Source: Haliotis cracherodii (Eukaryota). Taken from it: DNA of 64,000 nt. The DNA is taken from assembly GCF_022045235.1 (NCBI RefSeq), contig NW_027266286.1:50902001-50966000 (forward strand), read 5' to 3'. The position numbers were made by a program, and so were the translations under genes. The notes under the pieces were generated by a model. That model had not been told where the DNA came from and did no database searches. It saw only the letters and a program-made list of their open reading frames with translations. This document shows positions 33,009 to 52,259 of the stretch, in pieces. Position 1 is the stretch's first letter. Each line of letters opens with the position of its first letter.

Positions 33009-33618
33009 AGTGGTAAGTTTGAGTGGTAAAAATTCACGTCAGCTACGAGAGAAGCACAGAGAGCGAATGACACTTCCCCAGTCAGTCAGTCAGTTTCTTA
33101 GTTTTAACGACCCCTTCTAGCATAGCTAATTTCGGGGTCGGGGTGGCCCCGTACTAGTAGATAGGGAGAATTTGAAAAATAAAGTCCTGATAATGACGTG
33201 AATAGTGGAGATATGCTAAGGTAGCCACCCAAAAAAATGTAAGGTTTTATGGGGCAGGGGAATGGGGTGGAGGGCTGGGTGATTGGTGTGTTGGGACGGG
33301 GCCTAGCTATAGTATGATTTATTTGGAGTATTTATAGTTGGTTATGTTTTGTGTGGTTTGTGGAAGAATTAGAAATTATTTGATAGTTTTCTTAAGTTGT
33401 TTTTGTCTCACGGGGGCTTTGTTAGGAAGGATAGTGGGCAGTGAGTAAACAACGATTTGGGATTTTAGGTTGTTTTTTTTTGTTTTGTTTTTTTGTTTTT
33501 TGTTTGTTTGTTTTGTTGTTGTTTTTTGTGGGTTTTTTTAAATGTCTTGGGGGAAGTGCATTTGGTTTATATCCGTTAGGAAGTTGGATGGATGATTGTG
33601 TCGCTTTTGTGGGTGGTG

Positions 33619-36600
33619 TTAGATTAGTTTGATGATATCTGTTTTTGTGATATAATTTATGATTGTTTTTTGTATTTGTTGGGGATTGTGGGGGGATAGG
33701 AGTGTGTGGATAGTTTTTGTGTATTTTGCATCTAGTGTGTTGATGTACTGTATTCTGTGTGGTAAGTAGAGTGTGCACGTGTAGAACAGGTGTTGTATTG
33801 TTTGGGGAACTTGACATGTGGGGCAGAGCCCAGTGGAATGGCGAAAATTTAATTTTGTGATGCCTACATATAGCCTGTTTAGTGCGGATTGTATATTACG
33901 TGAGTTGCTAGAAAGATTTACTTTATTGATTTGTTTATTTATTGTTTTGTATGTCCATGTGGCGGGGGAGGTGTGCAGTTGTTTGAAGTTTTCTTGGGTT
34001 ATTAGTTTATTTATGATGGATTTATATTCCTGTTTGCTGTATGTCAGTGGGTAATTAATATGTTTATTTTTTGCTGCTTGTTTGGCCGCTTGATCTGCGT
34101 TTTCGTTTCCCGTGATCCCAATATGTGAGGGTACCCATACAATATTGATTTGTTTATTCTGTTCTGTTAATGTTTTCGTTAAGTGTAGTATTCGGTGTAG
34201 TAGATGTGGCCTGTTTGTGTAATTTCTGTTTTTAATTGATTGTATTGAGCTAAGTGAATCTGTGAGGATTAGAAGTTTGTTTTGTGTTATTGTCTCTGCC
34301 ATTTTGAAGGCCATATAGATTGCTGTTTTTTCGGCGGTATGTATGGATAGGTGGTTTGGGATGCGTGCTGATGTGGTGGTTATGTTTGGTTTGGTTGTGT
34401 GTATTGCGAAGGCTGTTGTGTGGTCCGTCGGGTTGTGTGACCCGTCTGTGTAGATGTATGTCCAATCTGGCCAGTGTTGTTGTATGTAATCCATTGCCAT
34501 TATTTTTTGTTGGTGCTTGTTTGATGTTATTTTTGTGATGTTTGTTAGACCAGTGTCAGTATGAGGAGGTGGCAGGTGATATGAGTAGTCATGAATGACA
34601 GGGGTGAGTTTTATGTTTTTAAGTTTGTATGTTTTGAGAAGGTGGTTTAGCCGAATGGTGAATGGGAGTCTTCGTCTTTTTTTGATTAGTTTGACTTTCT
34701 GTCTTAGTGGTAGATTTTCTGTTGTTGTTATCAGGCTGCTTAACAATGGGTTTGTGCATGCTGTAGCCCAGTAGTTTAGTGTGATTTGTTTGCGTTTAAG
34801 GGGGAGAGCTATTTCCCCAGTGAGCTTTAAGAGAGATGTGAGTGCGGTGCCTGATATTGTACCTAGTGAGATTGAAAGTGCTTTGTATTGTATTGAGTCT
34901 AGTTTCTTTGAGTCTGTTTGTGTGAGTGCGTCGTATGCGGGTGCGGCGTATTCTAACTTGGGTCGGATGAGTGTTTTGTAGACAGTAAGTAGCGTGTGCT
35001 GGTCTGCTCCCCAGCTTGTTCCCCGTATGCTGCGCATTAAGTTAAGATCATAGCTGCATTTTGTGATGAGGTGTTTGATATAGGGTGTGTATGTTAGGTG
35101 TTGGTCGAGTATTAGGCCTAGAAATTTGGTTTGTGAGCTGTAGTTGATTTGGGAGTTATTTAGAGTTAAAGGTGGGGAGTAGTTTTGCATGTTAGGTGTT
35201 TTGAAGAGTATGGCTACTGTTTTGTCAGTATTGATTTTAAAACCCCATGTATTTGCCCATGTGTCAATATCATTGAGTGCTTGTTGAATGTGTTCCTGTG
35301 CTGTACCTAGTGTTTTGTGTGAAGTCCAAAGTGATGCGTCGTCTGCAAATTTAGCTGGTTTGATTGTTGAGCGGATGTCTGTGAATATGTCATCGATCAT
35401 AAGATTGAAAAGTGTTGGAGAAAGGACACTGCCTTGAGGTGTACCGTTTTGGATGGGATGTGGGTCAGAAAGTGTGTTGTTTACTTTTACAGTTATGGTA
35501 CGATTTTTGAGAAAGTTGTGTATGAAGTTTAGCATACGTCCTTTAATATTTTTGTTTGACAATTTAGTGATTAGGCCGTCATTCCAGATCATGTCAAAGG
35601 CTTTTGAGAAGTCGATGAATACAGCTAGGAGATAGTGTTTGTTAGCCTGGGCTACTCTGATGTCGTGTTCAATTCGAATGATGTGATCTAGGGTGGTTCT
35701 GTTTGGCGTGAACCCGCTCTGGTCTGCATGTAAGAGATTGTTTGAGTCTATGTGGTGTTGAAGTCTTTTTTTTATTATTGTTTCCATGATTTTGCACATA
35801 TTTGATGTGAGTGATATGGGTCTATATGATTCTGGGCTCTGTGGGGGTTTGTTTGTTTTTTTGATTGGGATTACCAGTGCTTGTTTCCATGTCGTAGGTA
35901 TTTGAGCGGTATCCCAGACTGCATTGAGGAGTTTCAGTACAAGAAGTTTTCCGTGCATGCTGAGGTTTTTTAGTAATATATAAGTTAAGTCATCTGCTCC
36001 TGGAGCAGACGACGTGGTTTTGCTTTGGAGAGCGTGTGTCAGCTCGTGTATTGTTAAGGGTGCGTTGTAGGGTATATGGGCTTGGGGTGGTTGTGTGATG
36101 TAATCAGGTGTAGTGAGTAGTTTCTGTTGGAGTGAAGTGGGGTGGTTTGTGTTACTACTTATATGTTGGTAGTGTTGAGCTAATGTTTGCGCTTTTAATT
36201 TGTTATCAGTAAGGTTGTCTATTTTGTGGATGTGTGATGATTTTTTGGTACCGTTTATTGCCTTTAGTTTGCTCCACATGGCCTTTGAATTGTTTTTTGT
36301 TGTGTTTAAGGTACTGCAGAATTTTTCCCAGTGTTCTTTTCTCGTGTTTTTTATTAACATGTGTGTACTGTTTCGTAGTTGTTTTGCGTGTGGGAGTTCA
36401 TGTGGATGGGTTTTTGCGCGTCTAAATGCTCGTTTTCTTTGTCTTCTAGCCTCTTTTATTTCTGGGGTCCACCAGGGAACTTTATTTCGTTGGGGGTTGG
36501 GGTTTGTTTTGGGGATACACTTAGTGGCTATAGTGATAATTTCTTTTGTTAATTTTTTGGAAAAGATTTCAGGGTCTGAATCTATAATTTGTAGGTTGTC

Positions 36601-50992: not shown

Positions 50993-52259
50993 GTTTGAAG
51001 TTCGAGTGGTTGGCCTCCTTCAGCTTGATTTCAGCTGAGGCCACCTGGTTGCGAGCGACAGGTCCGAGGGGAGGAGGGTTTCTTAAAGCAAAGCTGATTA
51101 CTGCTTCTTGCTGATCTTGGTGTAATATGTGGACACGATCTATGGGGGATCCAATGTCTGGAGCGATTGAGCACGAGCAACATGTAACCATGAGTGATTT
51201 GAATCGAATGTGACACACTTCCCCACAGACGGCCCGGCTGATACTCCGGAGGCGCGGACGTCGGAGGAGACACCTTGCTTGTTGTGGCTGATAGCTGCAC
51301 GCTTACAAGCGCGTGTGCTTTTTCGTGTATTTGTATCCGAATAATCACTTCTTAATCAAGGAAAGTTTCAATTTCAACAACACAGTTAGGTAGTAAAAAC
51401 ATTTGGCTACATTTCGGTTACAATAGCAACACTCACGGGTGAAGTTCAAAGCCACACGTGATGTTTCCAATGAAGCGACCCAGTCTAAATTGTAGACATC
51501 GCTACTTTCAAAAGCACATTTTTAGCCTTGAGACTCAAGTTTTTGCATTTTAAACGTTGCCTGTCAATTCTCAATATATCTAACTATGAAAGTAAAACAC
51601 AACACTCATCAGTATTGTCTATGATAAGCTAGAACAAGCGTTCAAACAACGACAATGAAGCACGTTTTTCTGACGACTTCGCCATTTTGCAACAGAAAAC
51701 ATTTGACAGTATATTTCTGGAAACATAATTTTGGTCACTTCAATAAAGTTGAAACTAACTTTGTCATAACAAGTAAGTAACGGGGATTTTACTTTCAGGA
51801 AAACAGTCTACTAAGACGAGGATCTCGGGACACAAGCACTTAGGGCGCGAAGCCCCGAACAGTTACATATATACATAGGTGTTTAGATCACTCGATCGGT
51901 CGTCACAGATTAAGTCTTTTTGCCTGTCTTAATAGCACGATATTAGTAGGGGTCTTCGTCGTTTGGATGTTAATATTACCAGAACAATATAGGCTACCAT
52001 GCATCAACGAAAAGTGAATGTTTGAGACGAGAGGCCGGATCGAGTGAGCGAGTGTGCCGGGCCTCGTGTTAAACAGTGATCACATGTTTTTACAACGGCT
52101 AGATTTTGTAGATTTTAATCCCTGTAAATATACATCATAAATCAACAAACACAACATGTCTACTGAACCCGCTGAAAACGCGAGCATGCTGTTTTCATGG
52201 CAATGTCTTTTTACCAATGTGCGGTGTGTATATGTAGCTAAAGTTTGCCGATAAGCATT

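Follow-up and report, generated by a model that had tools for sequence, protein, structure and literature searches.

The 64,000-nucleotide stretch of Haliotis cracherodii DNA studied here (the window; C23:50902001-50966000 in an assembly of 1.18 Gb) contains a tandem array of units of ~3012 bp, extending from ~29870 to the window end, whose unit pairs a minus-strand histone H1 gene with a plus-strand 5S ribosomal RNA (rRNA) gene. Copies of one family of long interspersed nuclear elements (LINEs), denoted F1, sit in this array at the H1 transcription start. This raises the question of whether F1 is specialised on the H1 promoter, as the original prediction from this sequence proposed, or whether a more general rule brought it there. 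F1 is found to be a dispersed, low-copy family that is not H1-specific, and its hits at H1 are, on balance, probably the product of promoter-guided integration rather than of H1 recognition.

Insertions at the H1 start site

Seven 5S genes and seven histone stem-loops are present in the window array, and the H1 open reading frames (ORFs) of the array contain the Pfam domain Linker_histone. Read on the minus strand, the empty H1 site is ...CCGTCTG TGGGGAAGTGT CATTCGCTC... Given the H1 initiator (Inr) CATTCG and a downstream promoter element (DPE)-like GACGTG near +29, both read off the sequence directly, the insertion point lies between -1 and +1. Three of the nine H1 sites within the window are occupied, as had been counted before. 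Pattern searches of the whole assembly yielded three filled 5' junctions (A and B with a GTCA filler, C without) and two filled 3' junctions, compared with at least 79 sites that match the empty target exactly, of which 57 lie on C23 and 22 on C39, an unplaced contig; only ~3 of ~82 sites are filled.

The F1 family is represented in the window by four pieces, named A to D, all on the minus strand; their coordinates are presented in Table 1. Of all F1 copies in the assembly, B alone keeps both reading frames open, and the stop of its ORF1 overlaps the start of its ORF2 (ATGA). ORF1 has no Pfam match, while ORF2 matches Exo_endo_phos, RVT_1 and RNase_H, each above the cut-off, and its best database relative is only 39% identical. 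The description of the element as an RNase H-bearing, I-like LINE is thus borne out by the APE, reverse transcriptase and RNase H domains of ORF2 and by the three CCHC knuckles of ORF1. Apart from 354 bp that it lacks, A is 99.7-100% identical to B; the two differ by 14 substitutions, the 354-bp deletion in ORF1 and a 1-bp deletion that shortens ORF2 in A.

In both A and B, the target is duplicated over 11 bp (TGGGGAAGTGT), the 5' junction contains 4 nt of filler (GTCA) and the tail reads (ACTG)3AC. Coordinates and junction reading agree with the earlier placement of both copies at the H1 start site, co-oriented with H1. These junctions support insertion of F1 by target-primed reverse transcription exactly at H1 +1, in the orientation of H1. 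Because filler, tail length and duplication are common to both copies, A and B are treated as one event, most probably a single insertion later duplicated inside the array.

The 5' end of C also lies at H1 +1, where ...GAAGTGT is joined straight to CATTCG and the GTCA filler is lacking, in line with the earlier reading of this junction. Its 3' flank is not H1: 128 bp of unique non-array DNA are followed by a repeat. Fragment D does abut H1 upstream spacer, as predicted, yet element position 592 is joined to ~-120 of H1, so that D is not at the start site. The spacer flanking D (2004-2630) is 96% identical to the array unit, and D itself is 94-100% identical to a copy at C23:36.09M versus 86% to B, although its flank is only 4% diverged from the array. 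D belongs to an older subfamily and is not a DNA-level ancestor of A, B or C.

Distribution of F1 and number of events

A whole-genome search with the last 400 bases of F1 identified at least ten additional loci, on other chromosomes, where the tail is complete and the flanks are unrelated. Between 0.13 and 0.44 of the sequence words of the element also occur in related organisms. Altogether, at least 13 loci with complete tails were obtained in the 3'-end search, with an H1 flank only in A and B; as for 5' ends, only those of A, B and C are located at H1, and the ORF1 region occurs at only ~20 loci genome-wide. Four copies (C1, L007, L008 and L022) carry their own target duplications at sites other than H1. 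The C1 copy has 5796 bp, the duplication TATCAATTTA, one extra G and a broken ORF2, and the other three are 5'-truncated with duplications of 8-12 bp. Another copy, on C45, is a clean insertion that interrupts a palindromic repeat resembling a miniature inverted-repeat transposable element (MITE). A further candidate explanation, in which the repeat found beside four F1 tails would be a 3' transduction or a reverse-transcription chimera, was discarded, given that the C45 copy interrupts a contiguous MITE.

No feature of the nicked DNA unites these sites. The five duplications and their flanks have no common consensus; no endonuclease consensus was found for F1, and its tail has no useful microhomology with the H1 site. 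By eye, the 5' untranslated region of F1 and the H1 leader present no similarity beyond CATTCG, and Rfam reports nothing relevant in the F1 flanks. An assembly-wide pattern search for the tail plus H1 leader found no 5'-truncated F1 copy at the H1 site, with only A and B matching. Given that most copies lie at unrelated flanks (the outcome that the original prediction had itself named beforehand as speaking against it), that only ~3 of ~82 sites are filled and that no truncated copies exist at H1, strict specialisation of F1 on the H1 promoter is extremely improbable.

How many separate events occurred at H1 depends on C. Derived sites common to A/B and the C1 and C45 copies, excluding C, number 6-7 + 4, compared with 1 + 1 common to B and C; C branches outside the group formed by A/B, C1 and C45. 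The private coding changes of the A/B lineage comprise 10 non-synonymous and 9 synonymous changes, compared with a neutral pattern of 119 non-synonymous or stop changes and 44 synonymous ones in dead copies (binomial p 0.046). In addition, 25 private substitutions have accumulated in the A/B lineage without a single frame-breaking indel in B, against ~1 indel per 5 substitutions in dead copies. These values suggest that the A/B lineage has been under purifying selection. Given the 10:9 ratio and the absence of a frame-breaking indel in B, most of the change would have arisen while the lineage was actively retrotransposing, with the present insertion following only recently. Since B is the sole intact copy and its lineage carries this signature, A/B probably postdates C and arose independently of it, and we infer that C represents a second hit, of greater age, at this H1 base. 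The flank haplotypes of A and B were also considered as evidence, and were set aside as uninformative: they are not each other's closest, and share a single exclusive variant.

An older, 5'-truncated F1 copy with a 12-bp duplication, L008 on C80, provides a case outside the array. On its upstream side, the flanking DNA can be aligned to the proximal promoter of H1, presenting CTCCGACGTCCGCGC, 8 bases, TATCAGCC and 10-11 bases to the nick, and its duplication ends directly before CAT(T)CG, as it does at H1. Downstream of L008 there is no H1 coding sequence. The flank is instead a member of a small dispersed repeat (other members are L103-L110), most of whose other aligned members have a TATA-like box (e.g., TATAAGCC) where H1 and L008 have TATCAGCC; the latter is present in none of the eight other aligned members. 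These junctions unambiguously mark L008 as an independent insertion, at the base equivalent to the H1 site in a diverged version of the promoter module. Exact reuse of homologous promoter positions does occur and, together with the probable separateness of C and the distinct subfamily of D, L008 indicates that the association of F1 with the H1 promoter is not chance. Of the earlier claim of repeated use of this position, the reuse itself is probably real, given C and L008, while A and B count only once.

As a separate observation, homology between H1 and the dispersed repeat spans the proximal promoter from -75 to +8, the corresponding module of the repeat being AGCAAGG...CCGACGTCCGCGC-N8-TATAAGCC.

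Position of the nick relative to promoter elements

Two sister families assist in interpreting this reuse. F2 and F3 have the same domain architecture as F1 and, likewise, a TATA-like motif ~20 nt before the nick. In contrast with the ~20 loci of F1, its (ACTG)n tail and the degenerate -30 box at H1, F2 (42% ORF2 identity to F1) is dispersed: a first look gave 1470 candidates for its 3' end, and its flanks are unrelated. One full-length F2 copy is inserted 21 nt after TATATG and 3 bp ahead of 5S +1. This copy and a 200-bp F2-like 3' fragment both occupy the 5S -11..-4 site with the identical 8-bp duplication GATAAGCA, and are independent events. A further F2 copy (C23:51111443-51117655) lies ~20 nt from this TATATG box, on its far side and in the opposite orientation, and has hardly any target duplication. 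A preference of F2 for genes transcribed by RNA polymerase III (Pol III) was ruled out, given the absence of tRNA genes and the unrelated flanks.

Reuse of one base is also seen in the MITE-like repeat. Its base CCACCCT^CTGTATATCAC, 21-23 nt after TATATATA, is adjoined by the 3' tails of at least three LINE families, namely (ACTG)n, (TAAG)n and (CAA)n tails, four of which are F1 copies, and tails of other LINE families abut this site in 3/7 sampled copies.

The best TATA-like score within -12..-44 from the first nick was sought with an approximate TBP matrix, with 200,000 random sequence positions as controls for empirical p values. The best score falls at -16..-23 in all six F1 sites and in four of the five F2 sites, with an empirical combined p of 0.0014 for F1 and 0.00013 for F2, both from small samples and with an offset window chosen after viewing the data. 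Having 10 of 11 best matches within 9 of 33 offsets has a probability of ~2e-5, with the same post hoc window and with neighbouring offsets that are not independent. The F3 site presents GATAAAGG at -20.

Reuse of the same base is better explained by this general rule, common to non-specific sister families and placing the nick ~20 nt past a TATA-like -30 element, than by H1 recognition. Under promoter-guided integration, F1 would make its first-strand nick ~20 nt downstream of a TATA-like -30 element, in promoter orientation. A nick near -11 combined with a target duplication of 8-12 bp would place the first base of F1, which has its own Inr CATTCG, at the host +1, and the new copy would thereby be born behind a host promoter. 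The guiding cue would be the -30 element, or factors bound there, and not the nicked sequence. The H1-5S array offers ~80 identical copies of such a target site to a low-copy, recently active family from an APE, reverse transcriptase and RNase H clade that is abundant in the genome. More tentatively, with chances that fall a little short of even, a whole clade of APE-type RNase H LINEs in this mollusc may read core-promoter architecture, in the form of a TATA-like -30 element or its bound complex, at RNA polymerase II (Pol II), Pol III and transposable element (TE) promoters; that clade would nick ~10 nt upstream of the start site, with F1 as the low-copy member that displays this at H1.

Several points weigh against promoter-guided integration. 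The case for C as a separate event depends on marginal statistics (p ~0.05) and on the intact state of B, and C has no 3' H1 junction and is located at a rearranged array edge. C could thus be a rearranged descendant of the A/B event, via the shared CATTCG; accordingly, the earlier suggestion that C is a separate event holds as probable, on its branching, the coding-change ratio and the intactness of B, and is weakened by the lost 3' junction and the rearranged edge. The -30 element of H1 is poor as a TATA box (AGTATCAG, empirical p 0.67), and therefore a TATA rule based purely on sequence fails to predict the H1 site. Moreover, 2-4 hits at H1-type promoters in ~15-20 F1 events exceed what a genome-wide TATA rule would lead one to expect. 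Finally, the sample of six F1 sites is tiny, the offsets were picked with the data in view and the matrix is approximate. As for the poor H1 box, either promoter occupancy rather than sequence would be what is read, or F1 would have an additional preference for the H1 module.

The alternative that survives best is that one chance insertion of a non-specific LINE at H1 was spread and rearranged by unequal crossover, with C derived from the same event after loss of GTCA by exchange at CATTCG and with the remaining coincidences being meaningless. The identical junctions of A and B speak for it, and the array edge at C is indeed rearranged, with a truncated H1 fused at a palindrome and a unique 3' flank. 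Exchange could have proceeded through the 6 nt in which the F1 5' end matches the H1 Inr; B, as the sole intact copy, could be a resident master; and the array holds ordinary LINE insertions from at least three other events. Nevertheless, B remains intact after 25 private substitutions with a low ratio of non-synonymous to synonymous change, which argues against long neutral residence, and C branches outside A/B, C1 and C45. D is of another subfamily although its flank is so little diverged, TATA-like motifs are enriched at other F1 sites, and L008, at the homologous base of a diverged promoter, cannot be array spread. We thus regard this alternative as unlikely.

Less probable still, though not negligible, is that the F1 lineage recognises an H1-type core promoter, e.g., CTCCGACGTCCGCGC-N8-TATCAGCC, with frequent off-target insertions. 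The 2-4 hits among ~15-20 events (A/B, L008, possibly C and D) concern a target of ~10 kb in 1.18 Gb, TATCAGCC is confined to H1 and L008 among the aligned members, and the H1 site is poor as a generic TATA box, all of which speaks for such a preference. It is at odds with the location of most copies elsewhere, the lack of a consensus in the nicked sequences, the absence of truncated copies at H1 and the small fraction of filled sites. In addition, the widely dispersed sister families present the same geometry at unrelated promoters, and the four F1 copies at the MITE site lie in sequence dissimilar to H1.

Survivorship, in which insertion is random and copies at host start sites are over-represented since they are transcribed and become sources, would suit the only intact copy lying behind the H1 promoter and the need of full-length copies for a promoter, yet it is very unlikely, because the dead 5'-truncated copies L007, L008 and L022 could never have been sources and still have the same TATA-like motif at the same offset, and the 200-bp F2-like fragment at the 5S site behaves likewise.

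Relation to known elements and further features of the locus

The APE-type LINEs of the R1 and Tx1 clades (R1, TRAS/SART, Mutsu, Keno, Dewa and others) resemble F1 in hitting a multicopy gene array repeatedly at one precise position, in the orientation of the gene and with a short duplication. However, nearly all of their copies, many of them 5'-truncated, are in the target, whereas F1 is mostly elsewhere with no truncated copy at H1; and their specificity resides in the nicked sequence, whereas F1 nick sites have no consensus. F1 is therefore unlike the R1- and Tx1-type site-specific LINEs in three defining features: copy majority, truncated copies and nick consensus. The word "histone" is absent from the open-access text of three Kojima papers on target-specific elements.

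In the parts of the literature consulted, the non-LTR (long terminal repeat) element TRE5-A of Dictyostelium and the yeast LTR element Ty3 are described as integrating at a fixed distance from Pol III genes via TFIIIB (PMC6101501, PMC5006619, PMC8632968). According to these accounts, they would share with F1 a position set by the promoter machinery rather than by the cut sequence, a fixed distance, and multicopy genes that are hit repeatedly. They differ in that TRE5-A and Ty3 target Pol III genes, as far as these accounts go, whereas F1 and its sister families are found at a histone promoter of Pol II, at TE promoters and at a box upstream of 5S, with what looks like a TATA-like -30 element as the cue. 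By analogy, F1 would work most like Ty3 and TRE5-A, through a putative protein contact.

By architecture, the closest comparison is another one. The Drosophila I factor and the I superfamily combine an ORF2 with APE, reverse transcriptase and RNase H domains, an ORF1 with three CCHC knuckles, a 3' tail of short repeats and an Inr-like 5' end. The ORF2 domains, ORF1 knuckles, short-repeat tail and Inr-like 5' end are common to F1 and the I superfamily. The I factor is regarded as lacking a fixed target. By architecture, F1 is an I-like LINE; its RNase H domain and its ORF1 knuckles would suit the I, Nimb, R1 or LOA-like groups.

In the open-access literature, no description was found of a LINE guided by -30 elements, of a LINE that targets histone genes or of promoter-capturing non-LTR integration. 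If the proposed rule is true, LINEs, which are easily 5'-truncated, gain a promoter by integrating where one already points. Factor-guided integration would also extend from the Pol III genes of Ty3 and TRE5-A to APE-type LINEs and Pol II-type core promoters, and the seemingly dedicated parasites of multicopy gene arrays in this genome would be explained. F1 adds a low-copy family and the case of a histone promoter to this promoter-guided reading. For annotation, several copies at one array base are insufficient to call a LINE site-specific. For histone biology, the array contains H1 units whose upstream promoter is now predicted to drive a retrotransposon.

Table 1. Coordinates of the features discussed. 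Positions refer to the window unless a contig or locus is named.
Feature	Position	Strand	Remarks
Copy B, full-length F1 LINE	44947..51210	-	6264 bp
B ORF1	49292..50992	-	566 aa; three CCHC zinc knuckles at aa 317-370
B ORF2	45288..49295	-	1335 aa; APE endonuclease, reverse transcriptase (FADD), RNase H, C-terminal CCHC
B downstream copy of 11-bp duplication TGGGGAAGTGT	44936..44946	-	followed by H1 Inr CATTCG
B upstream duplication copy and 4-nt filler	51211..51225	-	duplication 51215-51225; GTCA 51211-51214
Copy A	33081..38989	-	junctions identical to those of B
A downstream duplication copy	33070..33080	-
A filler and upstream duplication copy	38990..39004	-	GTCA 38990-38993; duplication 38994-39004
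Copy C	26933..29871	-	96-97% identical over 26939-29871; three internal deletions; (ACTG)5 tail
H1 promoter stub upstream of C (-1 to ~-91)	29872..29968	-	fused to truncated H1 coding region; edge of array
Fragment D	1025..2003	-	older subfamily; element positions 592-1595; 86% identical
Reference empty target	41952..41988	-	direct sequence reading and alignment to TATAAGCC module
-30 element GAGTATCAGCC of reference empty target	41978-41988	-
11-mer that becomes duplicated, reference empty target	41958-41968	-
Inr CATTCG of reference empty target	41952-41957	-
L008	C80:3811515-3811616
F2 full-length LINE	L070:1074-7288 (C23:51016573-51022787)		ORFs of 550 and 1253 aa; (TAAG)n tail
200-bp F2-like 3' fragment	L068:950-1150 (C23:50975349-50975549)		same base; different from full-length F2 copy
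Further F2 copy in array	C23:51111443-51117655 (L086, L096)		opposite orientation
F3 LINE	L083:2177-8325 (C23:50984776-50990924)		77% nucleotide identity to F2; (CAGT)n-type tail
MITE-like repeat loci	L080 (C4:19766100-19766580); c45 region L082/L081/L003; L073-L079
Shared deletion start region in B	49368-49722		B compared with A, C and C1 copy
Palindrome break, fusion next to C	29962-29975
Palindrome break, 943-bp deletion	L068:3215-3232		ends at 5S-upstream LINE site
H1 174-aa units	32484-33008, 41371-41895, 44350-44874		compared with 53603-54166 onward (187 aa)

Three deletions, of 354 bp in A, 187 bp in C and ~260 bp in the C1 copy, all start at one base, element position 1489, at the edge of a C-rich tract (G-rich on the opposite strand); their far ends differ, with little microhomology. 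They are independent of each other, and look like structure-induced changes of the DNA. A palindrome, GCGCTTGTAAGCG, at ~-91 of H1 is likewise a recurrent breakpoint, with two different rearrangements breaking inside it.

Two H1 protein variants exist in the array: one of 174 aa, in three units around A and B, and one of 187 aa, in the rest. The 5S copy that adjoins B (52260-52378) has a lower score than the others, 95.9 vs 111.5 bits. The F3 copy is situated 142 nt downstream of an H1 stem-loop and is co-oriented with H1; a deletion next to it (unit positions 2240-2721) leaves a 170-aa chimeric ORF. A gap of ~4.4 kb in the array periodicity at C23:51069923-51077297 presumably corresponds to another insertion. 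Interspersion of H1 and 5S genes has reportedly been seen in Mytilus as well (PMC4106214).

The palindromic MITE-like repeat is abundant in the assembly, with at least 792 candidates. At C56:40537711-40552578 (L071/L072), a distance of 11.86 kb separates two old F1-like fragments that are 83-85% identical. This spacing equals that of A and B by chance, and the pair was rejected as a parallel to it, being part of a local 3-kb segmental duplication with no H1 or 5S; a tandem-repeat block of 1.5 kb lies between the two fragments.

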